From positions 1-64,000 of the IMG/VR virus record IMGVR_UViG_3300029258_002750: a stretch of DNA of 64,000 nucleotides, one strand, 5' to 3'. The translations under genes and the position numbers were made by a program. Below the pieces are notes generated by a model. The model had not been told where the DNA came from, made no database searches, and saw only the letters and a program-made list of their open reading frames with translations. Of this stretch, positions 3 through 58,221 are shown one piece after another (the stretch's first letter is position 1; each line of letters starts with the position of its first letter).

Positions 3-209
3 GCCCGCACCGAGGAGTCCGGCGTTCCGCTCGACTACCTCCGCCGCATCCACGACAAGCACGAGATGCTCGCGGACGCGATGTCTCGCTACACTCGCGT
101 CCTACGCGTGGACTGGAACGAGTTCGGCGACGTCGAAAACCTCAACGCGGAGATCAACAAGATCGCGGCCGAGGAGCGCCCGTTCATGAAGACGTGGAAT
201 GGATTGTAG
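3..209 (+). CDS. C-terminal fragment of deoxynucleoside kinase-like protein (5'-truncated by window)
   Basis: Frame 3 reads ARTEESGVPLDYLRRIHDKHE...WNGL*, resembling the dNK lid/C-terminal motif R.EE..I.LDYL..LH; lies upstream of thymidine kinase. Confidence 0.55.
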   Translation, partial: ARTEESGVPLDYLRRIHDKHEMLADAMSRYTRVLRVDWNEFGDVENLNAEINKIAAEERPFMKTWNGL

Positions 210-484
210 GGGTGGCGTTCAAGGCGCCTTCCCCAGATCCGAAGGACTACGAGCTACTGTGCAATGATCTTCGCGAGCGCGGATTCGAGTTTGGCGACGA
301 TGCTGTGTGGCGGCACAAGTGCGGTGCGCGGCTCGACGACGGGGCGTGCCGCAACCTGCTCGGGATGTGGGGATCGAGTATCCGGGAGGATGTCCTCGAA
401 ACACTCGCGCCCTACATCCCGGCCCCGCCGAGTGCGATCGAGAAGCTCGGTGACATCGTGAGACTCGCCGCCGTGTGCGGCTAG
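194..484 (+). CDS. hypothetical protein with C-terminal SAIEKLGDIV tag
   Basis: 96-aa ORF overlapping previous stop; ends PSAIEKLGDIVRLAAVCG. Confidence 0.7.
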   Translation: MEWIVGVAFKAPSPDPKDYELLCNDLRERGFEFGDDAVWRHKCGARLDDGACRNLLGMWGSSIREDVLETLAPYIPAPPSAIEKLGDIVRLAAVCG

Positions 485-496
485 AAAGGAGAAGAC

Positions 497-982
497 GTGG
501 AGAACGTCGTGCAAGGCGGGACAGTGCCCATTGTCCTCTCTTATCGCCGCGTCTCGAAGCGGCCAAAGCTGCGCCGGGTCAAGCGGTTCGTCGGCTTCCG
601 CCAGGTAGCCCGGAACCTAGTGGAGAAGGCCATCGACTTCGTGCAGGAGGTCGCCTACGAGACCGACCACGAGGTGCTCGAGTGCGGCAAGACCGAGGTT
701 GTCCACTGGGCCTTGCAGGTCGCTGATCCCTGGAGCAACGACAACGAGGGCGAGCTGGTCGTAACGCGTGTGCCGGACAAGCCCGCATGTGGGGCCAACT
801 TCGAGATCATCACGATCGACGCGAACATGGGCCGCCCGCCAGCTGACCCCGGCAACGGGACCGGCGAAGAGAAGTTCGCAGCCCGGCCTGTCAACCACGA
901 GGTGGCCCGGCAGAGGATGCGAGAGATGCTCGCCCGCGAGGCCCAGCTCGAACAGGATCAGGCCGGTGAGGAGGCCGCGTGA
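497..982 (+). CDS. hypothetical protein
   Basis: 161-aa ORF, GGAGA SD upstream, coupled to next ORF (GTGA). Confidence 0.65.
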   Translation: MENVVQGGTVPIVLSYRRVSKRPKLRRVKRFVGFRQVARNLVEKAIDFVQEVAYETDHEVLECGKTEVVHWALQVADPWSNDNEGELVVTRVPDKPACGANFEIITIDANMGRPPADPGNGTGEEKFAARPVNHEVARQRMREMLAREAQLEQDQAGEEAA

Positions 983-1209
983 CAGCGACACGCACCAAGC
1001 GACAGGTCATCCTTGTACGCGAGAACAACCACGGCCTGCGTGAGGAGCGCCGGGTGAGGATGCGCGACCTGGTGATGGGTGACTTCTTCCGCATCGAGAC
1101 GGACGATCCCGAAGATCACCTGTTCGGATCGCGGGAGGTGTTCGAGGCCCTCTCCGAGCCATACAAGGAGAAGGACGTGTGGGGGATCGACGTGAGGATC
1201 GAGGAATGA
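979..1209 (+). CDS. hypothetical protein
   Basis: 76-aa ORF, overlapping start/stop on both sides. Confidence 0.6.
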   Translation: MTATRTKRQVILVRENNHGLREERRVRMRDLVMGDFFRIETDDPEDHLFGSREVFEALSEPYKEKDVWGIDVRIEE

Positions 1210-1959: not shown

Positions 1960-3102
1960 ATGAACTTCAACGAGATCCTCAACATGGCAGCCGTCTTGCC
2001 GCACGAGGTGCCCCTGTTCTTCCTGGGGCGCCCCGGTATCGGCAAGTCGGCGCTCGCCCAAGCGATCGGTGCGGCCGAGCGGGCTCGTGCCGAGGCGGCC
2101 GGTACAGCCGGTCTCACGGTCAGACGGGAACTCACCGGGCACCTCCCCGAGGATATGTCCGGCGTCCCGTTCATGGTCACCTTCACGTTCGACGGCAGCG
2201 ATCAGCGGTTCACCGACTTCTGTCCGCCCAAGTTCCTCGGCCAGCTCGCCAAGGGTGCCGGGCCGGGCGGTTCCGATCCCTACGGGGTCCTCGTGCTCGA
2301 GGACATCACCCAAGCGCAGCGCGCCGTCCAGACGGCCTGCTTCCAGCTCGTGCAGGAGCGGTCGATGGGCGACCTGGAGCTGTCTCCCAACGTGCGGATC
2401 ATCCTCACAGGGAACCGGGCCAGCGACAAGGCGGGCGCGCGTGAGCTGCCCTCCCCGCTCCGCAACCGGGTCTGCCTGATCAGCCTGGAGCCCGAGCTGG
2501 AGGAGTGGATGTACTGGGCGGCGAGCCAGAGCCTCCCGGCCGTGATCGGCGGTTTCCTCCAGTGGAAGCCCTCCTTCTTCAGCCAGCTCCCGACTCAGCA
2601 GGACAAGGAGAACGGCCAGTTCGCGACTCCGCGCGCCTGGCACAACGTCGGTCTCCTCTACGACGCGTCCGTCGCGTTCGGGAAGGGCGACCTCGGTCCT
2701 CTCTACACCGTCTCGGCCGGGCTGGTCGGCGTCGGCGTCGCGACCGAGTTCGTCGCCTTCGTCCGGCTCCAGAAGGAGCTGCCCAACCCGAAGGCGGTGC
2801 TCGACGATCCCGAGAAGGCCATGCCGAGCCCGCCCGAGGAGCCCGATCGGCTCGCGGCGCTCGTCACGGCGCTCGGCGAGTTCGCGGCCCTCAACCAGAC
2901 CAAGGACAAGAAGATCTACATCAAGCTGCTCCTCGCGCTGGCGCACGTCTCCCAGAAGAGCCGTGAGTGCGTGGCGGCCGGTGTCTCGGTCTTCCAGGCC
3001 AACGGCGGCGACGTGTCCAAGCTGGTCGACGCTGCCGACAAGCACAAGAAGGATCCCAGGGTCCTCGCGGTCCTGAAGTTCTTCGCGGAGAGCACCAAGT
3101 GA
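1960..3102 (+). CDS. MoxR-like AAA+ ATPase
   Basis: GRPGIGKS Walker A, LVLEDI Walker B, TGNR sensor, PLRNR Arg finger, ATPRAW. Confidence 0.85.
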   Translation: MNFNEILNMAAVLPHEVPLFFLGRPGIGKSALAQAIGAAERARAEAAGTAGLTVRRELTGHLPEDMSGVPFMVTFTFDGSDQRFTDFCPPKFLGQLAKGAGPGGSDPYGVLVLEDITQAQRAVQTACFQLVQERSMGDLELSPNVRIILTGNRASDKAGARELPSPLRNRVCLISLEPELEEWMYWAASQSLPAVIGGFLQWKPSFFSQLPTQQDKENGQFATPRAWHNVGLLYDASVAFGKGDLGPLYTVSAGLVGVGVATEFVAFVRLQKELPNPKAVLDDPEKAMPSPPEEPDRLAALVTALGEFAALNQTKDKKIYIKLLLALAHVSQKSRECVAAGVSVFQANGGDVSKLVDAADKHKKDPRVLAVLKFFAESTK

Positions 3103-4367
3103 GCGCGGCCCAGGCTCCCACAGTCGACGTCTCCTACGTGGTCTCGAAGGCGCGCACGAGGCTCGTCGCGCGCCTTCCCTTCCTGGGCCGGATTGCCATG
3201 AACATGGCGCCCCGGGCCGCGAAGCCCGAAGACGGCGTGAAGACGGCAGGGATCGCCCGGGACGGAACGGCGGTCTTCAGCGCTGAGTACCTCGCCACGC
3301 TCTCCGACAAGGAGATCGCGGGCGTGGTCGCTCACGAGGCGCTTCACCCGGCGCTCCAGTTCTGGGCGAGGAAGGGCAACCGGCACCACCTCCTCGCCAA
3401 CATCGCCCACGACCTCTCCTTCAACTTCTGGATCGAGGAGATGGCGTGCGGCGAGATCGAGCTGCCCAAGGGGTCTCTCCTCGATCCCAAGTTCCACGGG
3501 ATGTCGATGGAGGAGATCTACGCCTACCTCCTCAAGGGAGACAACGGCTCGGGCAAGACCACGATCAAGTGCAAGGGTGGTGGCCAGATCGTCGTGGACA
3601 CGAAGGGCGGCGGCGGCGACCAGTACGGCGACTGCCGAGACGACCTGGCCGAGTCGCCGGGCGGCAAGAAGGCGTCGCGCGGCGACCGCTCGGCACAGAA
3701 GAAGCTCGAGAGCGAGTGGAAGATGACGCTGGCCGAGGCCGCGCAGCACCACGAGCAGCGCTCGAAGAGCAAGGGCACGCTCCCGGCCGGGCTGCGCCGC
3801 TACATCGAAGAGCTGCTCCACCCGAAGCTCGACTGGACCGAGCTGCTCAGGAAGTGGTGCGGCGAGAACGGGCGGCGCGAAGACTACTCGTTCCTGCGGC
3901 CGAACCGCCGGTCCTACTCGCTGGGGACGATCCTCCCCTCGCAGTGCGCAGGCGGCTACGCTGATGTGGTCTTCCTGCTCGACTCGTCCGGTTCCATGAG
4001 CCAGCGAGAGATCCGGCGCGGCCTCTCGGAGGCGCAGGGGATTCTGGAGGAGATGGGCTGTGAGATCCGCGTGATCGTCTGCGACGCGGCCGTCCACACG
4101 GACATGAGCGTCGAGGAGGCGTGCGAGATCGAGGTGAAGGGCGGCGGCGGGTCGAACTTCTGCCCGGCGTTCGAGCTGCTCGACGAAGACGGGTTTGACG
4201 GCGCGGTCGTCGCCTTCACGGACGGCATGATCGACGTCCCGACCGAGATGCCCGTCAACATGCAGGGCTGCCTCTGGGTCACCACGGGCGACTACAGGCC
4301 GCCGACCGAGACGTGGGGCGAGCACATCTCGATCCCCGACGACAAGAACGACGAGGAGGAGTACTAG
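3099..4367 (+). CDS. DUF2201-type HExxH metallopeptidase-like + VWA domain protein
   Basis: AHEALH motif; DSSGSM MIDAS, GGGSNF, FTDG; typical partner of the upstream AAA ATPase. Confidence 0.85.
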   Translation: MSAAQAPTVDVSYVVSKARTRLVARLPFLGRIAMNMAPRAAKPEDGVKTAGIARDGTAVFSAEYLATLSDKEIAGVVAHEALHPALQFWARKGNRHHLLANIAHDLSFNFWIEEMACGEIELPKGSLLDPKFHGMSMEEIYAYLLKGDNGSGKTTIKCKGGGQIVVDTKGGGGDQYGDCRDDLAESPGGKKASRGDRSAQKKLESEWKMTLAEAAQHHEQRSKSKGTLPAGLRRYIEELLHPKLDWTELLRKWCGENGRREDYSFLRPNRRSYSLGTILPSQCAGGYADVVFLLDSSGSMSQREIRRGLSEAQGILEEMGCEIRVIVCDAAVHTDMSVEEACEIEVKGGGGSNFCPAFELLDEDGFDGAVVAFTDGMIDVPTEMPVNMQGCLWVTTGDYRPPTETWGEHISIPDDKNDEEEY

Positions 4368-6048: not shown

Positions 6049-6438
6049 ATGGGCTGGAGCTTCTACGAGGATCACGAGGACCCGGACCACACCGTTTACG
6101 CAGTCTACCGCTACGGCACCGGCAAGGCGCGGACGTGGAAGCTGGGTCGGGGGACCATCGAGGAGATCACCAGCGCGGTCCTGCCTGCGGGAACCGCTCC
6201 CTCGGCCGTGGACTCGCTGGGCGAGCTGGAGCGGCCCGACGCGGGCGGCATCGAGTCCTTCGACGAGAACCCCGCGAACCGGATCATCCAGTTCGAGGGG
6301 ACCATCTACGCCGCGCACGCGAGCCGGGTCTGGCGGCTCGACGAGGGGAACGACGATTGGCGGCCCTCCGAGTTGCCCGATGGCCTGGTACTGACCGAGG
6401 GCGGGGCGCTCCGGGTCGAGTTGCCGGGGGCTCCCTGA
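6049..6438 (+). CDS. hypothetical protein with internal SAVDSLGEL tag
   Basis: 129-aa ORF with GAGG SD. Confidence 0.65.
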   Translation: MGWSFYEDHEDPDHTVYAVYRYGTGKARTWKLGRGTIEEITSAVLPAGTAPSAVDSLGELERPDAGGIESFDENPANRIIQFEGTIYAAHASRVWRLDEGNDDWRPSELPDGLVLTEGGALRVELPGAP

Positions 6439-6524: not shown

Positions 6525-6598
6525 TGGACGTGGTGGGAGTCGAACCCACAACTTCAACCATTTTAAGTGGTTAGCCTCTGCCGTTGGGCTACACGTCC
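6525..6598 (-). tRNA. tRNA-Leu(TAA), short variable loop, canonical elbow
   Basis: GGACGTG/CACGTCC-A; D arm GCCCAACGGCAGAGGC; AACCA-CTTAAAA-TGGTT; T arm GTGGG-TTCGACT-CCCAC. Confidence 0.9.
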
Positions 6599-6603
6599 GC
6601 GCG

Positions 6604-6822
6604 CTAGGCGGCGCCCTGCTGGGCGCCCTTGCAGCACGGGCATAAACCCTTGGCGGAGCAGGATCCGCACGTGAAGATCCACTCGACCTCGGGATCCGAT
6701 GCGAGCGTCGGGTCCTGGGCGAGGATGGCGCGGAGCCGCTCCTCGAACTCCTCTGGGTGGGACTGCCCACATACGGAGCACGTGGCGGCGAGGCTTGCGG
6801 CAACTACATCGGAGCGGCTCAT
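6604..6822 (-). CDS. small Cys-rich hypothetical protein
   Basis: CxxC ... CxxC ... CxCC; ERLRAILAQDPTLASDPEVEW. Confidence 0.45.
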   Translation of the reverse strand: MSRSDVVAASLAATCSVCGQSHPEEFEERLRAILAQDPTLASDPEVEWIFTCGSCSAKGLCPCCKGAQQGAA

Positions 6823-6874
6823 GGGTCAAGCTCTCTACCCAGAGCCTAGCTCGTCCTGTTGGATAAATCTAGGT

Positions 6875-7195
6875 TTATGGAAGAACGCTTGGGGGACCTG
6901 TGTTCCCCGACCCCAGGTCAGCGCTGACCAGGCTCCCCAGGAGCGACACGACGTCGTCCAGCTCGCGGGCGCCGCGCCGCTTCGCTTCGACGAGGGCCTG
7001 CTGCGCCGAGGCCCGCGCCCACCATCGGCCGGTGCAGACGTAGTAGGTCGTCGCGCCATCGAGTCCGAGGATCTTGTGCGGCTCGGATGCGTAGATCACC
7101 CGGTAGCTCCTGCCAATCGGTGGCGCCCAGTTGTTCTTGCGCATCCACCACTCGGCCTCTGATCGCGTACATGCGATGACGAGGATGGTGATCAC
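6875..7195 (-). CDS. hypothetical protein
   Basis: 106 aa, coupled to upstream ORF; DDVVSLLGSLV variant tag. Confidence 0.55.
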   Translation of the reverse strand: MITILVIACTRSEAEWWMRKNNWAPPIGRSYRVIYASEPHKILGLDGATTYYVCTGRWWARASAQQALVEAKRRGARELDDVVSLLGSLVSADLGSGNTGPPSVLP

Positions 7196-7404
7196 ACCAG
7201 CTCCGCCAGCTGATCAACGGCGCTCAGATGCGCCAGGCAGCTCTGCGTGAAGTAGCACGGCGCGCGGCCGTCGTCCCAATTCACGTACACGTCGCTGCCC
7301 ATCATCGTCGCGATGTAGGCAGCTGTCCCCTTCGAGCCGCGCGGGATCTCCGGGTGGATCCCGTTCCTCACCAGCACGACGCGATCGTTCTTCTGAATCC
7401 TCAC
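7192..7404 (-). CDS. small SH3-like hypothetical protein with C-terminal SAVDQLAELV tag
   Basis: GTGA-coupled start; IQKNDRVVLV...GT....YVNWDDG pattern. Confidence 0.6.
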   Translation of the reverse strand: MRIQKNDRVVLVRNGIHPEIPRGSKGTAAYIATMMGSDVYVNWDDGRAPCYFTQSCLAHLSAVDQLAELV

Positions 7405-7796
7405 CGGCCGCGCGTCCGGCGCTTCGCCCACTTCTTCTTGAGCCGCCTGATGTGCCTCGGTTCCCCGTTCGCTCCGCGAGCCTCGTCTGCTCGTCGGGCC
7501 TCGGCCGCCCACTGGCGGTACTCCCACTCGTAAGCCTTCATCAGCTTCGAGACGATATTGTCGGCCGCGCGTTTCGGCCTGGCGCCCGAGTAGCGACGGC
7601 CCTTCAGCACGTTCATCGCCGCATCGTGGATTCGCGAGCGAGCGGTCACAGGGGAGACGTGCGACGTCTGACACCACGCGGCCATCGATTCGGCGGCTTC
7701 GCGCATCAGCTGGCGGATCTCCTCCGGCGTCTTGCCGATCTCTGCCAGGATGTCGATGGCGCTTCGGTTGTTGGTCGTCTTGGGCACGTCAATCAA
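7401..7796 (-). CDS. hypothetical protein
   Basis: 131-aa ORF in minus-strand gene run. Confidence 0.55.
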   Translation of the reverse strand: MIDVPKTTNNRSAIDILAEIGKTPEEIRQLMREAAESMAAWCQTSHVSPVTARSRIHDAAMNVLKGRRYSGARPKRAADNIVSKLMKAYEWEYRQWAAEARRADEARGANGEPRHIRRLKKKWAKRRTRGR

Positions 7797-8352
7797 ACTC
7801 GGCCCACCAGCGCAACGGCATTAGCGGGTTCAGGTGCCGCGCCGGTAGCACGTAAGCTCCGCTGAAGGCCCCGCCGGTGGCAACCTCGTCCGGCAGCATT
7901 CTCGTGCTCGCCCATCCGACCAGCAGGACAGACGCGGCTGCCCTGCTGTACTTCTCCACGAGGAGAAGCATGTAGATCCAGTCGTCGTGGCGTTCCCTGG
8001 GCCGAACGAGCAGGTTGTAGTCGAGCGGCGGCCTGTCGGGGGACCGCATCAGGCTCGTCTTGAAGTCCACGTTGCATCCCGTGACGTCGTAGCCGATGTC
8101 GCCCACGGTCGGATTCCGGTTGGCGTACCAGCGGGTGACCTTGTAGTCGTTGGCGTTGCCGAACATGAAGCGGTGGCCAGCGAGCGTCCCGACCTGGCCG
8201 ACGATCTGGTCTTCGGAGAGACACTCACCGCGCTCCTCGTCCCCACGAACGTGCGAGACTCCGCCGATCTTCGCGGCCTCCGCCATCGCATAGGCGAATT
8301 CCATCTCGTAGCTGCGGATCGTCATGCGAACGATGTCAGGCTTGTCGATCAT
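7789..8352 (-). CDS. hypothetical protein (possible PD-(D/E)xK-like fold)
   Basis: 187 aa; DIGYDVTGCNVDFKTS resembles a D..x(n)..DxK nuclease-type core. Confidence 0.55.
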   Translation of the reverse strand: MIDKPDIVRMTIRSYEMEFAYAMAEAAKIGGVSHVRGDEERGECLSEDQIVGQVGTLAGHRFMFGNANDYKVTRWYANRNPTVGDIGYDVTGCNVDFKTSLMRSPDRPPLDYNLLVRPRERHDDWIYMLLLVEKYSRAAASVLLVGWASTRMLPDEVATGGAFSGAYVLPARHLNPLMPLRWWAEFD

Positions 8353-8375
8353 CGAGTCTCGCGGGGGTGTGTGAG

Positions 8376-8530
8376 CCCACGACGTAAGGGGCGGGGGACT
8401 TCATGGTGTTTCCACCTCTGGCGCGTCTACCATTCCGCCACCGACCACTGAGACGGCCGGGCGGGACTCGAACCCGCACGCTCTATCGAGCACCAGCTTG
8501 CAGGATGTAGTCTCCCAAGGCATTCGTGGG
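8376..8530 (-). ncRNA. YrlA-type Y RNA #1 (circularly permuted tRNA mimic)
   Basis: Order on minus strand: CCCACGA-ATG ... T arm GCGGG-TTCGAGT-CCCGC, acceptor stem closed by a loop (CCGGCCG-TCTCAG-TGGTCGG), D arm GCGGAATGGTAGACGC ... ACG-TCGTGGG closing stem; Ro60 gene in same island. Confidence 0.8.
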
Positions 8531-8540
8531 TTGTTCTAGT

Positions 8541-8610
8541 GGACCGACGTTGTGGGGTCAGCGAGACGAAACAGCTCCAAAAGATGTAGTCCCGCCGGAG
8601 CATTCGGTCC
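8541..8610 (-). ncRNA. short Y-like RNA
   Basis: GGACCGA-ATGC...GGACTACATC...ACAACG-TCGGTCC; same terminal module as the permuted tRNA mimics. Confidence 0.6.
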
Positions 8611-8641
8611 TATGACGACCGTGGGGCTTTCACCCACGGCC

Positions 8642-8771
8642 GCCGGATCGGCGACGCGAGAGCTTGCGTTCACGCCGCCGGGTTGCTGCGGCCCCTCTTG
8701 GCCCTGCCGAGTCCAGGTAACCACCAAGGGGCCTGCCATTCACTGATGTACTCCCGTCAAGTTCATCCGGC
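8642..8771 (-). ncRNA. structured RNA, divergent member of the Y-like family (rod with central bubble)
   Basis: GCCGGAT/ATCCGGC closing stem, GACGGGAG/CTCTCGCGTC, GGGAGTACATC motif, apical GGCCCC/GGGGCC stem. Confidence 0.45.
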
Positions 8772-8802
8772 TGCTGGCCGACGTTGTAGACGACGAGAGG
8801 GA

Positions 8803-8876
8803 TAGCGCGGGCAGGATTTGAACCTGCGATCTCCGGGTTATGAGCCCAGCGTCATACCGAACTAGACTACCGCGCG
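8803..8876 (-). tRNA. tRNA-fMet(CAT), canonical elbow
   Basis: C1/T72 mismatch, GGG/CCC anticodon stem, CTCATAA loop, D-loop GG, T-loop TTCAAAT. Confidence 0.9.
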
Positions 8877-8945
8877 TCGTTGTGCAGGGAGAACAGAGTC
8901 CCTTTGTCCTGGTCGAGCCAGGCTTACGCGACCTGCACCGCGATT

Positions 8946-9300
8946 TGGAGCTGGCGAGAATCGAACTCGCGTCCTGTAACCTATCCACCCGCGCGTCTAC
9001 GTGCGTAGCTCGCTCTCCTTAGTCCCCTCGTCTGAGCGCGAGCGTCTCTGGCGAGCGGGCGCCTCTAGGGAGTGTTCTCGTCCTTCACCGGGCGAGGCCC
9101 CGGATCAGGTACCAGCCCATCTTGTGGCCCAGACCTTTCACCCCATGGGCGGGGGATCCAGCTGGGGGCGGCCTTTTAGGCTGCCAGGCGAACAGGTGCG
9201 TTGGCAACTATTCAGTTTCCAGGTTGTTTATAGAGGCCAACCTGGGACCTCTACACGCAACGCGAGCTTCACCGGCCCAGTCGATACCAGTGTCAGCCCC
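8946..9300 (-). ncRNA. ssrA: tmRNA, tag peptide (A)ANAPVRLAA
   Basis: 5' GGGGCTGACACTGGTATCGAC, 3' GCGAG-TTCGATT-CTCGC-CAGCTCC-A, G3:U70; resume GCC at 9205, TAA at 9176-9178. Confidence 0.95.
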
Positions 9301-9315
9301 GTGTGTTCGTGCCCA

Positions 9316-9329
9316 AGTTGTCAAAGAGC
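9316..9329 (-). promoter_or_regulatory. boxA-like antitermination site GCTCTTTGACAACT in tmRNA leader
   Basis: Resembles rrn boxA; near-identical copy at 16687-16701 before the tRNA array. Confidence 0.5.
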
Positions 9330-9420
9330 GGAGGAACGGACCGGACGCTTCTCATAAGGGGGAAAGTGGGGATTCGATAGGCGCTACCCGGTCCGCTTCT
9401 CCTTCTCACTCGCTGTCTTG

Positions 9421-9429
9421 GTTATACCC
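9421..9429 (-). promoter_or_regulatory. promoter -10 motif GGGTATAAC upstream of tmRNA
   Basis: Variant of the recurring GGGTAGAAC motif. Confidence 0.55.
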
Positions 9430-9457
9430 TGCGGCCGACAGCCGCAAGGAAGTTTCA

Positions 9458-9529
9458 TGGGTCCGCAGGGATTCGCACCCTGACCGCCTCGGGTAAAAGC
9501 CGAGCGTGCTCCTGTTACACCACGAACCC
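9458..9529 (-). tRNA. tRNA-Lys(TTT), A18/G55
   Basis: CTCGG-CTTTTAC-CCGAG; T-loop TGCGAAT. Confidence 0.9.
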
Positions 9530-9530
9530 G

Positions 9531-9600
9531 TGGTACCCCCGCCCGGAGTCGCACCGGGGTCGCCGGGTTTAGAAGACCTGGCCGCCTCTCTGCCGGGGGC
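9531..9600 (-). tRNA. tRNA-Arg(TCT), reduced D arm, encoded CCA
   Basis: Loop CTTCTAA; T-loop TGCGACT; GCCCCCG/CGGGGGT-ACCA. Confidence 0.7.
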
Positions 9601-9603
9601 AAA

Positions 9604-9674
9604 AGCGGGCACCGGGAATTGCACCCGGGTCATCGGGATGGAAGCCCGACGCTCTACTTCTAAGCTATGCCCGC
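9604..9674 (-). tRNA. tRNA-Gly(TCC)
   Basis: TCGGG-CTTCCAT-CCCGA; T-loop TGCAATT; U73. Confidence 0.9.
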
Positions 9675-9678
9675 GAGA

Positions 9679-9750
9679 TGACCCCGGTGGGGATCGCACC
9701 CACACCTTCGGCGTGAAAGACCGACATCCAGACTACTAGACCACGGGGCC
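9679..9750 (-). tRNA. tRNA-Glu(TTC)
   Basis: TCGGT-CTTTCAC-GCCGA; T-loop TGCGATC. Confidence 0.9.
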
Positions 9751-9836
9751 AGGTGGCCGAGCGGGAGGGCTCGGCCGGGGGCGACCGGAAGACCGGACGC
9801 ACTCCACCATCACAGACTCGCTCGCGCGAGTTGCGA

Positions 9837-9908
9837 TGGGCACGGTGAGAATCGCACTCACGACCTCTGCTACGTCAAAGCAGCGCTCTTCTACTGAGCT
9901 ACGCGCCC
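9837..9908 (-). tRNA. tRNA-Val(GAC)
   Basis: CTGCT-TTGACGT-AGCAG; T-loop TGCGATT. Confidence 0.9.
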
Positions 9909-9994
9909 CGGCAACCGCCCGGTCCGTCAGGACCGTATTCCACCTTGGACGGATGGTGCATCCCTTCATCTAAACACGGGTCTAAGAGGCGGCA

Positions 9995-10076
9995 CGGAAG
10001 GCGGAGGAGTTGCACCCCATCCCGAAGGACCATCCGGTTTCAAGCCGGTACTCGGCGCTGGCCGAGATCGCCTTCC
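9995..10076 (-). tRNA. tRNA-Ser(TGA)
   Basis: Loop CTTGAAA, long variable arm, G73; T-loop TGCAACT. Confidence 0.85.
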
Positions 10077-10081
10077 AGACA

Positions 10082-10154
10082 TGGAGCCTACGGGACTCGC
10101 ACCCGTGCCCTCCGACCTGCCAGATCGGCGCTCTCCTAACTGAGCTAAGGCCCC
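10082..10154 (-). tRNA. tRNA-Ala(GGC)
   Basis: G3:U70; CCGAT-CTGGCAG-GTCGG; T-loop TGCGAGT. Confidence 0.9.
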
Positions 10155-10158
10155 TCGA

Positions 10159-10230
10159 TGGAGCAGAAGGGAATTGCACCCTCAACCTCGGCGTTGCGAA
10201 CGCCGCGCTCTCCTATTGAGCTACTGCCCC
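10159..10230 (-). tRNA. tRNA-Ala(CGC)
   Basis: G3:U70; CGGCG-TTCGCAA-CGCCG; T-loop TGCAATT. Confidence 0.9.
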
Positions 10231-10709
10231 GTGTGTTCGTGTTCTCCGCAGTCGCCGCAGTCGTGATCGCAGTGGGGACACTTGCCCTCCTCCGAGCACT
10301 CGCCGCAGACCGTGGTGACGGTCGTCATGTCCGGGTACTCCCTGAGCATCTTCTCGGCTAGCTGCCGGATGGGCAGCCCCGGAACACTCGGGTCCGGCTC
10401 GGCAGCCTTGCCGCAGACCGAACACTTCGTGTTCTCCAGGTGTTTGGCGAGCGCGTCGATCTTCGCTGCGTCGATCTTCGCGAAGGCATCGTGCTCGAAC
10501 TGGAGGACAGCGACCTGCCCGGTTGAGTAGTTCTCGGCGACCGGGTAGTCGGTGCCGCCGCGACCACATCGTGCGCAGGCGCGCATCATCATCGGATCGA
10601 GCGGTCGCTCCGGCTTGACCTCGGTCTGCGTGTGCTGCACGACCACGATCATCCGGCCGACGGATGGCGCGTCCTCACAGAACGCGCACCAGACGGGCTC
10701 ATCAACCAC
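10221..10709 (-). CDS. Cys-rich multi Zn-finger-like protein embedded in tRNA array
   Basis: GGAGG SD + GTG; six CxxC pairs; stop TAG is nt 8-10 of tRNA-Ala(CGC). Confidence 0.7.
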   Translation of the reverse strand: MVDEPVWCAFCEDAPSVGRMIVVVQHTQTEVKPERPLDPMMMRACARCGRGGTDYPVAENYSTGQVAVLQFEHDAFAKIDAAKIDALAKHLENTKCSVCGKAAEPDPSVPGLPIRQLAEKMLREYPDMTTVTTVCGECSEEGKCPHCDHDCGDCGEHEHTGQ

Positions 10710-10722
10710 TACGACCTCCGAA

Positions 10723-10778
10723 TCGGGCACCCGGGATTCGCACCCGGAGTCTCTCCTGATGAGATGAGAGAGACAACC
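10723..10778 (-). pseudogene. tRNA remnant (T arm + 3' acceptor strand only)
   Basis: CCGGG-TGCGAAT-CCCGG-GTGCCCG-A with no matching 5' strand or D arm. Confidence 0.5.
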
Positions 10779-10781
10779 CAA

Positions 10782-10852
10782 TCGGGGAACCCGGAGTTGC
10801 ACCGAGATTACACCGTCCCGAACGGCGCGTGTTGCTGTTACACCATTCCCCG
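10782..10852 (-). tRNA. tRNA-Pro(CGG)
   Basis: CGCCG-TTCGGGA-CGGTG; T-loop TGCAACT. Confidence 0.9.
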
Positions 10853-11458: not shown

Positions 11459-11470
11459 ACGAGCATCTTA

Positions 11471-11525
11471 CCCACGCGACCTCTGCGATTACAAGAGCGC
11501 GCTGACTAGACTGCGCTACAGTCCG
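11471..11525 (-). pseudogene. truncated tRNA-Pro-like 5' half
   Basis: CGGACTG-TA-GCGCAGTCTAGTCAGCGC followed by a distorted anticodon arm; T arm replaced by the promoter of the downstream nuclease gene. Confidence 0.55.
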
Positions 11526-11530
11526 TTGAA

Positions 11531-11615: not shown

Positions 11616-11703
11616 TTGGAGCAGCGCGCCTGGCGTCTCACCAGGAGACGCCGAAGCGCCCAGGGATACCGTTGCCGTACGACCGGCTCCCACGCCTGCA
11701 AGA

Positions 11704-48122: not shown

Positions 48123-49613
48123 ATGAGTTCCGCATCTCTTGAGGAGACACTGCCTGCCGCCATCATTCGGGGTGAACTAGGTATTCGTCTCGACGAGCTG
48201 GATGATGACCAGCGGGAGTTCCTCGAGCAGCAACTCACCCTGGTCTCGCGGCCTTGGGGGGACAACCCGCCCAGGACGGTCCGCTGCTACCGGGAGGAGG
48301 ACGGCTACCTCTGGATCCCACGCCACTTCGAGCCGATGTCGATGTGGCAGCTGGTCGAGGAGTGGGCGTGGACCACCGGCCGCCGCTACCAGTTCCGGGT
48401 CAAGGCGACGCTCGATCCCGAGCGCGGCCAGGTCAAGGCCGTACCAGCAATGATCGAGTACCTCAAGCGCCACGGCGCAGGCGTGCTCTGCTCGGGCACG
48501 GGTACCGGGAAGACGGTGTCGGGGCTGGTCATCGGCGCCCAGTTCGAGAGCTTCATCGGTATTCCGGTCTACAACGGACACATGGTCGATCACTGGACCG
48601 AGGACGCGATGAAGGTGCTCGGTCTCTCCGAGGATGACATCGGGATCGTGCAGAGCGACCGATGCGATCTGGGCAGGCCGGTCACGATCATGATGATCCA
48701 GAGCCTCCTCGCTCGCAGGTACCCGGACGAGCTGTACGAGCAGATCGGGTTCCTGATCGGCGACGAGACGCCGCACTTCGGCGCCCCGGAGTGGAAGGAC
48801 ACGGTGGGGCTGTTCCCGGCCCGATACCGACTCGGGCTTACCGCCAATCCGACCAGAAAGGACGGGCTCGACCAGATCATCAACTGGACGTTCGGCGAGG
48901 TCGGCTACACCGCCAAGCGCATCCGTACGGGGGCTGTCCAGGCCCCAACGGTAACGGCGATCTTCTGGAAGAAGACCTACCCGTGGGGCTCCTACTGCAA
49001 GTGGGAGAAGGACTCGTCCGGCCAGTGGGAGATGGGCGATGAGGGGCACCCGTCCAAGTACGACAACGTGCTCGCTGGCGACGAGGACCGTACCGACATG
49101 CTCGTCGAGGAGATCAAGAACGCGGCCGTCAAGCAGCGGTCGATTCTGGTGTTCTCCTCCCGTGTCGACCACCTGGTGGAGATGCGAGAGAAGCTCTCCC
49201 GGCTCCTCGATCCTCTAACAGCGATCGAGCGCCTGGCGCGGCTTCGCGCACCGCCGCCGAACATGCCAGTGACCGGCCACCTGAAGAGGGGGCTGAAGGT
49301 GAACCAGCGCGCGTGGGTGCTCAAGGCGGACATCATCTTCGCGACCTTCGCGATGGCGCGAGACGCCTTCGACGCGCCCAAGCTCGATACCGAGTTCTTC
49401 GGGACGCCGCCGGGCGATCCCGAGCAGCCAGCTGGTCGGTTGCGCGAGAAGGCCGAAGGGCACGACCGCAAGCCGCTGATGATTGTCGAGGTCTACGAGG
49501 ACACGCCGTATGGGCGCGACAAGTGGTGCAAGCGGCGAGACTGGTTCAGGAGGCGAGGGTTCAAGGTTCAGGAAGTTACCCGGGTTCCTCCCCGGGGCAA
49601 GGGGCGCAAGTGA
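48123..49613 (+). CDS. superfamily II helicase; leaderless
   Basis: GTGTGKT, IGDETPH, GLTANP.RKDG, LVFSSRVDH; GGGTAGAAC-N6-ATG. Confidence 0.85.
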   Translation: MSSASLEETLPAAIIRGELGIRLDELDDDQREFLEQQLTLVSRPWGDNPPRTVRCYREEDGYLWIPRHFEPMSMWQLVEEWAWTTGRRYQFRVKATLDPERGQVKAVPAMIEYLKRHGAGVLCSGTGTGKTVSGLVIGAQFESFIGIPVYNGHMVDHWTEDAMKVLGLSEDDIGIVQSDRCDLGRPVTIMMIQSLLARRYPDELYEQIGFLIGDETPHFGAPEWKDTVGLFPARYRLGLTANPTRKDGLDQIINWTFGEVGYTAKRIRTGAVQAPTVTAIFWKKTYPWGSYCKWEKDSSGQWEMGDEGHPSKYDNVLAGDEDRTDMLVEEIKNAAVKQRSILVFSSRVDHLVEMREKLSRLLDPLTAIERLARLRAPPPNMPVTGHLKRGLKVNQRAWVLKADIIFATFAMARDAFDAPKLDTEFFGTPPGDPEQPAGRLREKAEGHDRKPLMIVEVYEDTPYGRDKWCKRRDWFRRRGFKVQEVTRVPPRGKGRK

Positions 49614-55016: not shown

Positions 55017-55747
55017 TGACCGGCGCTGACGCGGATCCGCTCTTCGAGCTGCGGCTCGAGATCAAAGCCTGCACGGGCTGCCATCTGCGGCACACGAGCA
55101 AGCAGCGCGTGCCTGGGGACGGGAGCAGATCCGCGCCGATCATGCTAGTCGGAGAGGCGCCGGGCTACTACGAGGACAGAGACGGTGCTCCGTTCATCGG
55201 GAAGGCGGGAAAGCGGCTCGACGCGTGGTTGGATCGTGTCGGCCTCGATCGTCACAAGCACCTGTTCATCACCAATTGCTTGAAATGCAGACCGCCGAAC
55301 AACCGCTTTCCCGATTACGAGCGCGGCGGGCCAACCGATTGCTGTATGCCGTGGCTCGTGCGCCAGCTGGAGCTGGTCAACCCGTGGGCGGTGATCCTCG
55401 CGGGAAAGCGCGCGCTTCACCACGTTCTGCTCGACGGGTCGGTCGAGATGGCCGACCCGTTTCGGCCGTGGGTCGGCCGCGTCTGTCGGCGGCGCGATCT
55501 CTACGGCGAGGTCCGCTTCTACCCAATCTGGCACCCGGCCTACATCCTGCGGAACAAGAACCCCTACGAGGAGGAGCGGTGCATGGTCGCTATCGAAAGC
55601 GCCTTCGAGTACGTCGCCTCCAAGCAAGGCGGCGGCGGGGCGCCGGTGGAGGATCTCTACGAGGTCCGACCCGTTGGTTTTGTCCAGCACCAGCAGCGGT
55701 TCCGCTTGTTCGGTGCACCGAAGCCGATCCCGGAGCCAGAGGCATGA
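55016..55747 (+). CDS. uracil-DNA glycosylase family 4
   Basis: CTGCHL, LVGEAPG..ED, FIGKAG, TNCLKCRPP.NR, WHPAYIL. Confidence 0.9.
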   Translation: MTGADADPLFELRLEIKACTGCHLRHTSKQRVPGDGSRSAPIMLVGEAPGYYEDRDGAPFIGKAGKRLDAWLDRVGLDRHKHLFITNCLKCRPPNNRFPDYERGGPTDCCMPWLVRQLELVNPWAVILAGKRALHHVLLDGSVEMADPFRPWVGRVCRRRDLYGEVRFYPIWHPAYILRNKNPYEEERCMVAIESAFEYVASKQGGGGAPVEDLYEVRPVGFVQHQQRFRLFGAPKPIPEPEA

Positions 55748-56007
55748 CGCCAGCCGAGAAGCGCGCACACGCGGAGGAGCTGGCGAAGCTCAACGACCTG
55801 CTGCTCGATGCGGCGGGACCCGAAGGCGCGGGCGTGGAAACGAAGCTGGACATGCTATGCTACGCGCTCGCTGGCCTGCTCCGGTTCGAGGGGGATCGCC
55901 TTGCGGCCGAGCTGCGGGACTGCGACGAGGCGGCACCAGATGACCTGGACCAGCTTGAATTGTTCCCCGATTTGCCGCCCCCAACTCCTGATGTGACCGA
56001 TAGTTAG
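55744..56007 (+). CDS. hypothetical protein
   Basis: ATGA-coupled, 87 aa. Confidence 0.5.
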   Translation: MTPAEKRAHAEELAKLNDLLLDAAGPEGAGVETKLDMLCYALAGLLRFEGDRLAAELRDCDEAAPDDLDQLELFPDLPPPTPDVTDS

Positions 56008-56036
56008 GCCACTCAGGAGAAAAACCCTAAATAGGT

Positions 56037-57413
56037 GTGACAGGCCGGAGCCGTTTCGGTATTCTAAGGGGTAGCTCTAACCACCCCGAGGAGGAACGCC
56101 GAACCGTGCTAGCTGTCGCATACCGGGCTCCTCAGCCTACGGGCCGAGTCCCATCTACTCACAAGCCGTGCTCCGAGTGTGGGCGCGTGTTACCCCGATC
56201 AACCCACTATCGCCTCCGCTACGCCGACGATCCCTACGGTATCGCGCGGGGGCTCACCAAGAAGAAGCGCGCAGCCGTGCTCCAGGCTGCTGCGCCGAAC
56301 GACCGTGTACTCTGCGTGCAGCCTCGTTGCATCCAGTGCGACAACCTGCGCCGGGGGCGGCGCCGTGCGGTGACCGAGCTGCGAAGGAAGCTCAAGCCGC
56401 ACAGCTCGGCGGTCGTCAAGCACGACTCGCTCTTCCACACCGTCGAGATTCGCGGCCGGGTGCCGCGCGAGGTCCGGGAGCTGCTGCTCGAGCCCGCCGC
56501 GCGCGCCGGTCTGGTTGTCGTGGACAAGAAGGGTGCGCCCGTGCTCCCCAGAGAGCCCGAGGCCGCGCTTCGCGTCTGCTACGCGGGGGTGCTTCCGATC
56601 AAGGTGGTCAAAGAGGGCGCGAACCGGAAGATCAAGCCGTCGCGCCTCGGTCACTTCGGAGGCGAACAGATCGCGATGCTGAATGCGATCCCCAAGCTCG
56701 TCGCCAACCTGCCCAAGAGTCCTCTCGCTCGCCTCGCCCGAGACGTGATCGACGTTGCCCTCGTCCGGGAGTGGGGCGAGCACTCCGAGGAGGCGATGGC
56801 ATCGATCCTCGATCGCGTGCGCGTCCGCATGTGGAAGTTCGCGAGGAAGATGATCGCGGCGGGGCTGCTCGACACCGAGGAGGCCGAGGCGCGGCTCCTG
56901 AATGGGATCTACGATGGTGTGAGGACGTGGGACCCGCTGCATCCTTCGCACGCCGCGCTGGTTACCCACTGCGGTCACCGGGTCAAGCGGTCGCTACAGC
57001 TTCGCGGCCGGAAGGACCACAGGATTGCCGCTCGGAAGGGATCGGACGGTCGGTTCCACGGCGGCGCGGTATCGCTCGATGTCCTCGTTCCACCCACGGT
57101 CGCGGATGAAGGTGTGTTCGTGCCCCACGCCCAGAGCTACTCGACCGGGGCGGGCGCGGTCCCCCGCTCCTCGACGGAGCGGCGGGAGGGCAGCCGTCAG
57201 CTCTCTGTGCGGTCGGACGTTACAACGGCGCTATCCGGGCTGGACGAGGTCGACAGACGGATCGCCGAGGGGCTCTTCATGTCCGACGTATCGACGACCC
57301 GGCTGGCGCAGGAGCTGGGTATGACTGTTGGTGACCTGCGCAAGCGCGCCAACGCGATCAGGGAGACGCTCCAGGCTGCGCTCGCGCCGTACCAGCAGGA
57401 GGTGCTTTCGTGA
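56037..57413 (+). CDS. sigma-70-like factor with N-terminal Zn-finger
   Basis: CSEC...CIQC; region-2-like GIYDGVRTWDP; SLD; region-4 HTH LDEVDRRI...TRLAQELGMT. Confidence 0.6.
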   Translation: MTGRSRFGILRGSSNHPEEERRTVLAVAYRAPQPTGRVPSTHKPCSECGRVLPRSTHYRLRYADDPYGIARGLTKKKRAAVLQAAAPNDRVLCVQPRCIQCDNLRRGRRRAVTELRRKLKPHSSAVVKHDSLFHTVEIRGRVPREVRELLLEPAARAGLVVVDKKGAPVLPREPEAALRVCYAGVLPIKVVKEGANRKIKPSRLGHFGGEQIAMLNAIPKLVANLPKSPLARLARDVIDVALVREWGEHSEEAMASILDRVRVRMWKFARKMIAAGLLDTEEAEARLLNGIYDGVRTWDPLHPSHAALVTHCGHRVKRSLQLRGRKDHRIAARKGSDGRFHGGAVSLDVLVPPTVADEGVFVPHAQSYSTGAGAVPRSSTERREGSRQLSVRSDVTTALSGLDEVDRRIAEGLFMSDVSTTRLAQELGMTVGDLRKRANAIRETLQAALAPYQQEVLS

Positions 57414-57868
57414 GCGACAACATACAGGCCGCACTGGACGCGCTCGGCGGCGCGCGGCAGCAGAAGACGGGCACTGGTCCCGTCGAGCCCACGCTCGTAT
57501 CGAGCGGCGACGCAATCGAGGATCTGGGCAAGCTCGTCGAGCGGAACGCGGGCGTTCCCCAGGGCGTGCTGGCGCTCGCTTCGCGTGCGGCGCAGGCGGC
57601 CGATGAGTCGCGCGAAGCCGCCGCGAAGGCCAAGATGCTCAAGGCCGAGCTGTCCGAGGCGATGAAGTCGGCCGAGGTCGACCGGATCGAGATGGAAGAT
57701 CGGCAGCCGATCAAGTGGAAGACGAAGAACGACCGCCAGGTGTCCCGCAAGGCGATCATCGGCGTGATCGGGGAGGATGCGGGGCAGAAGCTCTGGGGCA
57801 GACTGCCTTCGCCGCCCAAGACCTATCTCGACATCCCCGCCCGGGAGATCCCCGATCCCGAGCAGTGA
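57410..57868 (+). CDS. hypothetical protein
   Basis: 152 aa, coupled. Confidence 0.6.
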   Translation: MSDNIQAALDALGGARQQKTGTGPVEPTLVSSGDAIEDLGKLVERNAGVPQGVLALASRAAQAADESREAAAKAKMLKAELSEAMKSAEVDRIEMEDRQPIKWKTKNDRQVSRKAIIGVIGEDAGQKLWGRLPSPPKTYLDIPAREIPDPEQ

Positions 57869-58221
57869 GCAACTCGTTCGTCGCTGCCAAGCCGTTCTTC
57901 AAGCCGCCGCCCGACGAGAAGCCGAAGGTCATCATCCTCGACTCAGCTGGTCAGCCGCCGTTCTTCCACCACTACTGGCCCTGCCCGTGGAAGCGCGGCG
58001 ATCTGGTGACCTGGTGGTCCGTGGACTACGGCAACCGCCTGGCCAGGGTGTCGCGCCCCGAAGGCCCCGGCCCCTGGGACTCGGTTCACATCCGGCTTCT
58101 ACGCCCGGTCGAGGTGCCCAACGAGCGCGGATCGTTCGATCGGCGCTGGGCGTTCACAGCCGATCGGTGCGATCTGGCCGAACCCAGTGCGATAGACCTA
58201 CTTGCGGACCTGGCCGGGTGA
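57865..58221 (+). CDS. hypothetical protein with C-terminal SAIDLLADLA tag
   Basis: GTGA-coupled, SH3-like core. Confidence 0.6.
   Translation: MSNSFVAAKPFFKPPPDEKPKVIILDSAGQPPFFHHYWPCPWKRGDLVTWWSVDYGNRLARVSRPEGPGPWDSVHIRLLRPVEVPNERGSFDRRWAFTADRCDLAEPSAIDLLADLAG

Follow-up and report, generated by a model that had tools for sequence, protein, structure and literature searches.

A short helical peptide tag shared by unrelated proteins in a clade of giant phages

A giant phage and its relatives carry one short helix-forming peptide on dozens of unrelated proteins, from loops of the DNA polymerase to mini-proteins built from pieces of capsid genes. The peptide looks like a shared address label, although what reads it is not known. 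We examined the first 64 kb (the window; 64,000 nucleotides) of a 275-kb phage contig from IMG/VR (IMGVR_UViG_3300029258_002750), in which a first-pass annotation of the sequence alone had described a 10–12-residue peptide on about 18 unrelated proteins, and compared it with loci of other phages, designated below by L numbers. The motif is confined to one clade of high-GC phages with T4-type head genes, and many of its carriers prove to be conserved mini-genes in which short pieces of the major capsid protein, prohead protease, portal or PolA are joined to the tag-bearing module.

Occurrence and conservation of the tag

The observation made in the first-pass annotation is borne out by the sequence. 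The window holds 19 in-frame copies of [P/R]-S-A-[V/I]-[D/E]-x-L-[A/G]-x-[L/I/V]; all 18 copies listed previously are present in their ORFs, and one more was found at 7731–7766 on the minus strand. Whether the frequency merely reflects a high-GC, Ala/Leu/Asp-rich proteome had been set out in advance as a question that could overturn the finding, and it does not. The originally proposed consensus, SA[VI][DE]xL[AG][DAE][LIV], matches 11 times in 18,019 predicted residues and a looser version 15 times, against analytic expectations of 0.001 and 0.005, an enrichment of more than 1000-fold over composition. In 2000 within-protein shuffles the means were 0 and 0.0025, and reversed proteins gave 0. 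Every six-frame match lies in a predicted coding frame, and a back-translated DNA pattern gave 6 matches in the window against 0 in 100 shuffles. Eight of the 19 copies end within 7 residues of the stop codon, and the four copies described previously as extended (25323, 25984, 26769 and 46510) are confirmed. Two copies, that in the helicase (49215) and PolA site 1 (41039), are weak matches, scoring 17–18 bits on a position-specific scoring matrix (PSSM) against 21–32 bits for the others. The copies, together with one untagged ORF lying within the array, are as follows.

428–463 (+): short form, 6 residues from the C-terminus of ORF 194–484; 30.0 bits.
6199–6234 (+): internal copy in ORF 6049–6438; 29.1 bits.
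7192–7227 (−): copy at the extreme C-terminus of ORF 7192–7431; 23.7 bits.
7731–7766 (−): copy near the N-terminus of ORF 7401–7796, not listed previously; 24.5 bits.
19711–19746 (−): copy followed by an acidic tail, C-terminus of ORF 19696–20004; 23.1 bits.
20004–20039 (−): copy at the C-terminus of ORF 20001–20327; 32.1 bits, the best copy.
20341–20376 (−): copy near the C-terminus of ORF 20320–20547; 21.4 bits.
25051–25086 (+): copy at the C-terminus of ORF 24670–25089, a fragment of an S77 prohead protease; 27.3 bits. ORF residues 22–118 align to the Peptidase_S77 gene of L086 (E 8e-9), and the ORF aligns to the S77-positive mini-gene of L004.
25323–25400 (+): long (hairpin) module in ORF 25086–25493; 27.9 bits. 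The N-terminal 77 residues of the ORF are a piece of a T4-type major capsid protein, with 46% identity over 61 residues to genuine capsid proteins (E 1.5e-9) and a weak Pfam Gp23 hit.
25490–25864 (+): ORF without a tag inside the array; a second S77 protease fragment (GxSSRG region), with a tblastn match to the protease region of L067 (E 5e-4).
25984–26061 (+): long module in ORF 25861–26109, inserted between two adjoining capsid-protein segments; 26.0 bits. The flanks match capsid-protein consensus ~250–290, and dN/dS against the orthologue is 0.18.
26229–26264 (+): internal copy with an acidic tail in ORF 26100–26369; 22.3 bits.
26564–26599 (+): copy with an acidic tail, C-terminus of the Gly-rich ORF 26366–26623; 28.7 bits.
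26769–26846 (+): long module in ORF 26604–26936; 27.8 bits, with an orthologue in L025 (dN/dS 0.24). The C-terminal flank resembles, by eye, the FD-V-DP segment of the S77 protease, though no alignment score was obtained for this ORF.
27677–27712 (−): tag-like sequence in the DnaB_C paralogue 27260–27964; 26.4 bits.
41039–41074 (+): PolA site 1, a degenerate tag in the loop after the ExoI strand.
41324–41359 (+): PolA site 2, tag plus acidic tail in the loop after the ExoII helix; 31.7 bits.
46510–46581 (+): long module in ORF 46396–46623, which ends in a capsid-protein-like C-terminal strand (V-x-x-x-NL); 28.0 bits, dN/dS 0.20.
49215–49250 (+): weak tag in a variable loop of the ResIII helicase 48123–49613; 17.0 bits.
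58183–58218 (+): copy at the extreme C-terminus of ORF 57865–58221; 27.1 bits.

The earlier inference, drawn from varied serine codons, that conservation is at the protein level rather than that of a DNA repeat is also confirmed. Pairwise nucleotide identity among the copies is 0.67 at codon positions 1+2 and 0.40 at position 3, and codons encoding the same residue are identical in 0.469 of pairs, against 0.421 expected from the codon usage of the window. Synonymous codon choice is thus at chance, so selection acts on the peptide. The carriers have no detectable similarity to one another outside the tag. In a larger set of 96 copies about 9 residues are held nearly invariant, position 4 is acidic in 92 (Asp in 66, Glu in 26), and 35 copies lie within 8 residues of the stop codon.

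Predicted structure of the module

The motif is helix 1 of an α-hairpin module of ~30 residues (long form), or it stands alone (short form), usually at a C-terminus and often followed by an acidic tail. Helix 1 is an N-capped amphipathic helix with a capping box S-x-x-D/E and a hydrophobic face formed by V3/L6/L9–10; in the long form it is followed by a D-P turn and a second helix. AF2 modeling of ORF 46396 gives a helix at residues 41–46, a turn and a helix at residues 51–67, with pLDDT 93–96. In PolA, AF2 gives a loop at site 1 (pLDDT ~78) and at site 2 a protruding helix of low confidence (pLDDT 52–63), flanked by disorder and lying outside the conserved exonuclease core.

No curated family or solved structure significantly matched the module: Pfam and PHROGs gave nothing for the carriers in this respect, a PDB profile search had a best E of 0.43, and the Atlas gave only noise-level hits. 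The long form is carried by 168 representative protein clusters within the clade, with no Pfam, PDB or bacterial counterpart.

Grafting onto conserved enzymes

Comparison of orthologues, proposed beforehand as the way to learn whether the tag is simply part of each conserved fold, shows instead that it is absent from orthologues outside one clade, so it is grafted; this holds for PolA, RNase H, the helicase and a small Zn-ribbon-like ORF. PolA site 1 corresponds to a clean 24-nt indel against the 94%-identical PolA of L002, and it has undergone at least 3 changes on the PolA tree. PolA site 2 falls in a ~36-column gap in 18 more distant orthologues. The two PolA sites are gained or lost at least 3 and at least 4 times within one 19-member clade and are absent outside it. 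RNase H carries a 25-residue tagged C-terminal extension that a relative without the motif lacks, a Dam C-terminus in L055 carries the tag, the helicase tag is present in L002 but absent from the L055 and L057 orthologues, and a small ORF is tagged in L002 but not in the window. The exception is the DnaB paralogue, where alignment with three genuine DnaB proteins shows no indel: the tag-like sequence occupies the position of a native DnaB helix with no change in length and is not an insertion. Chance composition or a native part of each fold is refuted for all copies except this one.

The tag is a clade-wide trait, present at 0.3–1.2 copies per kb in motif-bearing loci, against about 0.003 per kb in 304 kb of other T4-type head loci. 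Among relatives whose PolAs lack inserts, L056 has 0 copies and L057 a single off-frame hit.

Mini-genes built from head and replication genes

The carriers include S77 protease fragments with the tag at the C-terminus, capsid-protein fragments (Pfam Gp23 in 11 of 147), portal fragments and fragments of PolA motif B. These are fragments rather than members of the Gp23 family, since matches cover at most ~45 of 376 profile positions and genuine capsid proteins of 477–503 residues exist separately. The genuine capsid protein of a motif-bearing phage is intact and free of the module, and 6 kb around its gene holds no copy. The mini-genes keep intact frames and coupled start/stop overlaps and are under purifying selection, with dN/dS of 0.18–0.46 between phages. 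By regular-expression searches, 91 of the 149 long-module proteins examined show no recognizable fragment.

Interpretation

The analysis itself establishes that, within this clade, the module has been moved by recombination onto many unrelated proteins and is kept there by selection on the peptide sequence, whereas its action as a portable docking tag that brings all carriers to one common partner is our inference. The earlier interpretation, an amphipathic helical docking motif recruiting many proteins to one phage hub (capsid loading, a replication compartment or scaffold, or a protease/chaperone adaptor) or else a protein-level selfish insert, is partly supported: the helical, amphipathic, grafted character of the element holds, but neither the existence of a single hub nor its identity is shown, binding to any partner not having been assayed here. 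That annotation had also missed that the motif is half of a larger hairpin, that it is a clade-wide trait, and that many carriers are fragments of head and replication genes. We consider the generic docking-tag mechanism somewhat more likely than not, and hold our explanation as a whole, including the exaptation of many carriers from partial copies of the capsid protein, prohead protease, portal and PolA genes, with about even confidence.

Our favored partner, proposed only tentatively and more likely wrong than right, is the prohead scaffolding core. The tag would then be a functional counterpart of the T4 capsid-targeting sequence, loading a fast-evolving set of small proteins and some enzymes into heads, and A-[V/I]-[D/E] might serve as a processing site for the S77 protease. 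In favor of a link to the capsid, the carriers include S77 protease, capsid-protein and portal fragments. T-even internal proteins are diverse and share only a capsid-targeting peptide (PMC3012670), and the giant-phage S77 protease cuts at A-X-E, its C-terminal propeptide being proposed to target it to the core (PMC7411985). Several findings weigh against this partner: tagged enzymes (PolA, RNase H, Dam, helicase) are not expected virion cargo; cleavage inside the PolA exonuclease domain would be harmful; Asp outnumbers Glu at the would-be P1 position, whereas S77 proteases are described as Glu-specific; the tag is C-terminal or internal rather than N-terminal as in T4; carrier genes lie among tRNA and replication genes, not head genes; the 6 kb around the genuine capsid gene of a motif-bearing phage holds no copy; and the PolA motif-B fragments do not fit a capsid theme.

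Of the alternatives, all of which we regard as unlikely, a replisome or sliding-clamp client motif ranks slightly ahead of the others. The tagged enzymes are classical clamp clients, the tag sits at C-termini or in surface loops, and the phage encodes a DnaN-type β clamp (31955–33067), DnaB and a primase next to the main array; the tag would tether DNA enzymes and small regulators to the clamp or another replisome hub, much as the C-terminal tails of T4 gp43, gp33 and gp55 all bind the gp45 clamp. However, the tag does not fit the β-clamp consensus QL[SD]LF or QLxLx[LF], as Q occupies the x position in only 26 of 96 copies, the following residues are L-[AG]-x-[LIV]-[AVG] with no terminal aromatic, and the tag is predicted to be helical; a canonical-looking QLELF occurs in another small ORF, at 55951–55965. 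Relatives without the motif have the same clamp and enzymes, and this reading does not explain mini-genes made of capsid, protease and portal pieces. A further, doubtful possibility, which would be of considerable interest if true, is a "bait plus warhead" counter-defense, in which early mini-proteins present the most conserved peptides of the phage's own capsid protein, portal, prohead protease and DNA polymerase, the patterns read by bacterial immune receptors, each fused to one common α-hairpin that blocks, traps, diverts or disposes of the sensor; proteins that tolerate insertions (PolA, RNase H, Dam) would carry the hairpin directly. Host Avs families sense capsid protein, portal, family-A polymerase and RecA-type ATPases, and Lit and CapRel detect capsid protein through short motifs (bioRxiv 10.64898/2026.01.04.697583; PMC9712102). 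The capsid fragments include the VQPM segment, the Gol region of T4 gp23; the intact, module-free genuine capsid protein is also consistent with this view, and fast gain and loss fits an arms race. The proposal is purely inferential, though: the host is not known, most long-module proteins examined show no fragment recognizable by regular-expression searches, RNase H and Dam are not among the sensed proteins named in the cited preprint, and Avs sensors are reported to recognize whole folds, not 20–40-residue pieces.

A turnover or processing tag, marking early proteins for timed degradation or cleavage, is also improbable. The reader could be a host protease or a phage-encoded machine such as the MoxR AAA+ with VWA-metallopeptidase pair at 1960–4367, whose VWA site could bind the near-invariant Asp/Glu; the window encodes two MoxR/VWA pairs, one fused to a DUF2201 metallopeptidase domain, relatives encode ClpS, and terminal placement is typical of degrons. 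Against this, the CobT-type MoxR/VWA pair is present in a relative without the motif (the distribution of the DUF2201 pair was not determined), internal copies in an essential polymerase are conserved over long times, and a stable hairpin with pLDDT above 90 is not a typical degron. Least likely of these, yet weakened rather than excluded, is a selfish in-frame insertion with no function for the phage, a mobile sequence spreading by recombination and merely tolerated on protein surfaces, with the mini-genes as debris from its movements. Its presence or absence varies between close relatives, it inserts between adjoining segments of conserved genes, and its locations are surface loops or termini, but the copies have no DNA-level identity, tolerance alone does not explain the near-invariant residues, the mini-genes are under purifying selection, and no associated nuclease or recombinase was found. 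Compositional chance or a native part of each fold, for which only the DnaB-paralogue copy in its native helix position speaks, is all but ruled out.

Comparison with known systems

The closest precedent is the T4 capsid-targeting sequence of internal proteins IPI–III and Alt, in which a peptide of about 10 residues is the only thing shared by a diverse, fast-evolving set of small phage proteins and an enzyme, and acts as an address label in a phage with Gp23-type capsid and S77 protease genes (PMC3012670, PMC7411985). That sequence is an N-terminal propeptide of about 10–20 residues ending in the gp21 site (L/I)-x-E, and its carriers are virion proteins; the present tag differs in sequence, has a hairpin long form, sits also in replication enzymes, and lies near an N-terminus in only one window copy, while incorporation of its carriers into the prohead core and virion was not measured here. 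With regard to the protease site, A-[V/I]-[D/E] fits the A-x-E of SPN3US (PMC7411985) only in the 26 of 96 copies with Glu at position 4, which leaves the correspondence undecided. The C-terminal propeptide of the SPN3US prohead protease (gp245) is paralleled by the S77-type fragments that carry the tag at their C-terminus, but these are truncated pieces encoded away from the head genes, and there is no evidence of cleavage.

Sliding-clamp binding motifs (bacterial QL[SD]LF, the PIP box and T4 gp45-binding tails) are likewise short motifs at termini or in loops, shared by polymerase, RNase H, methylase, helicase and small regulators, but they are extended peptides rather than a helix or hairpin. 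Encapsulin cargo-loading peptides and the C-terminal targeting tail of the HK97 protease also dock cargo to the interior of an HK97-fold shell through a C-terminal peptide; their consensus is unrelated, and no shell interaction is shown here. Rickettsia palindromic elements, which are selfish DNA, make in-frame insertions at surface positions of unrelated, even essential, proteins with presence/absence polymorphism, but they are recognizable DNA repeats of 100–150 bp, whereas here nucleotide identity is at chance and only the peptide is conserved. Finally, the module is not an intein or Hint-domain insertion, having no Pfam match and a length of only ~12–30 residues; the real mini-intein of PolA lies elsewhere, at 42227–42628.

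Genomic context

The contig IMGVR_UViG_3300029258_002750 is 275 kb long with 65% G+C, and no catalogued phage has near-identical DNA; by tblastn, the identity of its PolA to those of known phages is at most 31%. Our codon-usage gene calls give 82 genes in the window (nucleotides 1-64000). These include a replication module with initiator, DnaN-type clamp, DnaB, primase, PolA, ResIII helicase, UvsX-like recombinase and Cas4-like exonuclease, together with the following features:

6525-16678 and 28222-28298 (-): about 36 tRNA genes in minus-strand arrays.
8943-9300: a one-piece tmRNA (Rfam 126.8 bits) encoding the tag peptide ANAPVRLAA.
1960-4367 and 36405-38950 (+): two MoxR-type AAA+/VWA gene pairs, the first fused to a DUF2201 putative metallopeptidase domain, the second CobS/CobT-like and syntenic with PolA in relatives.
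17340-19016 (-): a Ro60-like protein (TROVE plus Ro60 vWA domains) next to the tRNA array.
23623-24039 (-): a Cpn10 (GroES-like) gene directly beside the array of capsid- and protease-fragment mini-genes; a relative (locus L056) encodes both Cpn10 and Cpn60, and relatives encode ClpS.
42227-42628 (+): a 134-residue mini-intein (PF14890) in the PolA polymerase domain.

The ...VRLAA ending of the tmRNA-encoded peptide loosely resembles the ...V(D/E)RLAA... of the motif, which we judged to be coincidental because the LAA ending is general for tmRNA tags.

The tag is conserved at the peptide level

The first-pass annotation had reported 18 copies of a short peptide tag on otherwise unrelated proteins, and this observation holds: all 18 copies exist, and a nineteenth lies at 7731-7766 (-). 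A frequency no higher than composition predicts had been put forward in advance as grounds for dismissing the motif. The original consensus matches 11 times, and a looser form 15 times, in 18,019 residues, against 0.001 and 0.005 expected from composition, with essentially no matches in 2000 shuffles and none in reversed proteins. Every six-frame match falls in a called gene. Codons for identical residues are the same in 47% of pairs, against 42% expected from codon usage, and third-position identity is 0.40. The conservation is therefore in the peptide, as the annotation had argued, and a DNA-level repeat or regulatory site is rejected, since codon choice is at chance and there are no hits in non-coding frames. 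Paralogy of the carriers is likewise rejected at BLAST level, as the 18 carrier proteins show no similarity to each other once the 12 residues are masked. Eight copies end within 7 residues of a stop codon, often with an ATGA or GTGA overlap into the next gene. A sub-threshold tag-like sequence (G-D-A-I-E-D-L-G-K-L-V-E, 11 bits) at 57506-57541 (+), in ORF 57410-57868, may be a decayed copy.

Predicted structure of the module

Across 96 distinct copies collected from the window and related loci, the consensus is (E/P)-P-S-A-V-D-(R/Q)-L-(A/G)-x-(L/V/I)-(A/V). The S-x-x-D/E element is a helix N-capping box, and V3, L6 and L9/10 form one hydrophobic face. In the long form, a D-P turn and a second helix ending in (R/K)-(V/I)-x-x-(W/Y)-(D/E) follow. 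The AlphaFold2 (AF2) model of ORF 46396, built with 70 aligned homologs, gives helix, turn, helix with pLDDT 93-96, while the rest of the protein is poorly defined. Short copies stop after helix 1, and many are followed by a run of Asp/Glu.

Searches for known relatives of the module gave nothing usable: there is no match in Pfam, PHROGs or a PDB profile search, and the "phage cement" hits from the ESM Atlas scored 0.80, which is noise level.

Distribution among related phages

A back-translated pattern scan of IMG/VR combined with six-frame PSSM scans found dense arrays in related large contigs, with 15 copies in 12.8 kb at locus L039, 13 copies in 14.8 kb at L049 and 12 copies in 12.6 kb of a Logan assembly (L004). 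Motif-bearing contigs include 3300033153_010718, 3300033153_010139 and 3300017971_000201 besides that of the window, whereas the contigs of P0022 and P0035 belong to relatives without the motif. A profile of the long form found 168 representative clusters at E ≤ 1e-3 among 1.84 billion proteins, almost all of them 50-230 residues long, and several carry two modules. One large protein from this search (P0185, 790 aa) has nine ~85-residue tandem repeats, each weakly matching only the second-helix part of the profile. A scan of 185,579 bacterial and archaeal species genomes gave only 5 single hits, none with the second helix, which we read as chance. The DNA pattern was also matched by a recurrent APSAIELLAELANEF protein in about 20 contigs of ~40-kb phages, but this is one unrelated orthologous family; the segment A-P-S-A-I-E-L-L-A-E-L-A-N-E-F recurs in one orthologous protein at loci L007, L010, L014, L015, L021-L023 and about 15 more, in many contigs of 67%-GC phages (up to ~45 kb).

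Comparison of orthologs shows grafting

It had also been specified beforehand that the idea of a grafted peptide would fail if orthologs showed the motif to be part of each conserved fold. We aligned 35 PolA exonuclease domains and built a PolA tree of 36 sequences. Site 2, positioned after the ExoII helix, carries the tag only inside one well-supported 19-member clade, in two members of which it is the long form, while in 18 more distant PolAs the position is a ~36-column gap. Site 1 is present in the window but missing in the closest relative, whose PolA (locus L002) is 94% identical over the 708 conserved alignment columns kept for the tree, the difference being a clean 24-nt indel. The tree needs at least 3 changes of state at site 1 and at least 4 at site 2. 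In the AF2 model (mean pLDDT 88.5), site 2 is a short helix with pLDDT 52-63 next to a disordered stretch and site 1 is a loop, both lying outside the conserved core. A possible third, degenerate long module (P-E-D-A-V-D-A-L-A-W-L…S-P-F-D) is found in PolA at 41669-41740 (+), in a region that varies among orthologs, and is modeled confidently by AF2 as a helix. At the position of the PolA mini-intein, the L002 ortholog has a much larger element, and it has a second, LAGLIDADG-type intein in the exonuclease domain, giving a 1652-residue ORF.

The RNase H of the same phage (L018:6907-7455) has a 25-residue tagged C-terminal extension, which its 52%-identical ortholog in a relative without the motif lacks. 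A Dam methylase in the related locus L055 ends in the tag, and the weak helicase copy lies in a loop that differs in L055 and in a further related locus, L057. A small Cys-rich ORF is tagged in L002, but its window ortholog (45294-45521) has an unrelated tail. Two relatives whose PolAs lack the inserts show no convincing copy in 22 kb each. The exception is the DnaB paralog, in which the tag-like sequence replaces a native helix with no indel.

Many carriers are pieces of core genes

Among 147 long-module proteins, 11 match Pfam Gp23 and 2 match Portal_T4; P0152 and P0177 pass the Gp23 gathering score, but over only about 45 of 376 positions. Our regular expressions recognize segments of the capsid protein, portal or PolA motif B in 58 of 149 proteins. 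In several proteins the module sits between two segments that adjoin each other in the real capsid protein. The same portal-like or capsid-like segment can lie on either side of the module in different mini-proteins (P0083 versus P0164; P0058), and some mini-proteins carry capsid segments in permuted order, which suggests recombination at the module. Within the window array 24670-26936, the pieces are as follows:

ORF 25086: capsid-protein residues ~70-125 (46% identity, E 1.5e-9).
ORF 25861: capsid-protein residues ~250-290 with the module in the middle.
ORFs 24670 and 25490: two pieces of an S77 prohead protease.

The L004 counterpart of the protease piece passes the Peptidase_S77 threshold and ends in the tag plus an acidic tail. 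We considered whether the arrays might represent a fragmented or module-bearing capsid gene and rejected this, as the pieces are not collinear along the arrays and a motif-bearing phage (3300017971_000201) has a separate, intact 477-residue capsid protein with no module and no tag within 6 kb of it. This inference rests on a sister contig, since three scans did not retrieve the capsid gene of the window's own contig. The mini-genes are conserved between phages, with dN/dS 0.18-0.46 against 0.12 for PolA. They are therefore maintained genes, not decaying debris and not a split capsid gene.

Interpretation

The finding is real and highly non-random. The analysis shows a sequence-specific helical module, selection on the peptide, repeated transfer onto unrelated proteins at termini and surface loops, and restriction to one clade. 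That the module is a docking tag for a common partner is inferred from these results: about 30 bits of conserved sequence cannot arise repeatedly by chance, and simple harmlessness would not hold nine residues fixed. The interpretation offered in the first-pass annotation is supported in part, in that its description of a grafted peptide is correct, while the function is unproven and the partner has not been identified; the description should be extended to a hairpin module, a whole phage clade, and mini-genes made from fragments of core genes. We view the tag as extending the idea of a shared targeting peptide, with a realistic chance that it is something more novel.

If the tag is an address label, it gives a ready handle for finding a hub of giant-phage biology by peptide pull-down or co-folding, and that hub could be head loading, a replication factory, proteolysis or counter-defense. 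The tag could also serve as a natural, minimal, transferable targeting peptide. It shows that a sequence-specific peptide of about 30 bits can spread through a viral proteome by recombination, even into loops of an essential polymerase, and because its DNA trace has been erased, this kind of modularity cannot be seen by DNA-repeat finders. The conserved arrays of mini-genes built from pieces of capsid, protease, portal and polymerase genes are, to our knowledge, undescribed, and may represent a new class of phage accessory proteins.

As the partner, we tentatively favor the prohead core, by analogy with the T4 capsid-targeting sequence. T-even internal proteins are diverse and share only that peptide (PMC3012670), giant-phage S77 proteases cut at A-X-E and have a C-terminal targeting propeptide (PMC7411985), and the carriers here include protease, capsid-protein and portal pieces. 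Several facts argue against this partner, however, in that Asp predominates, the position is not N-terminal, and PolA, RNase H, Dam and the helicase carry the tag.

A different reading, in which the mini-proteins are immune decoys, is suggested by the identity of the fragmented proteins with reported targets of bacterial sensors (bioRxiv 10.64898/2026.01.04.697583; PMC9712102). Only single chains were modeled, and none of these readings was put to a direct test. The tagged enzymes fit a clamp or replisome hub better than the prohead core, though the tag does not match the beta-clamp consensus and relatives without the motif keep the same clamp; solved beta clamps were too divergent for pocket residues to be read by comparison. 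Separately, a canonical-looking beta-clamp-binding pentapeptide, QLELF, is found at 55951-55965 (+), near the C-terminus of a small acidic protein (ORF 55744-56007).
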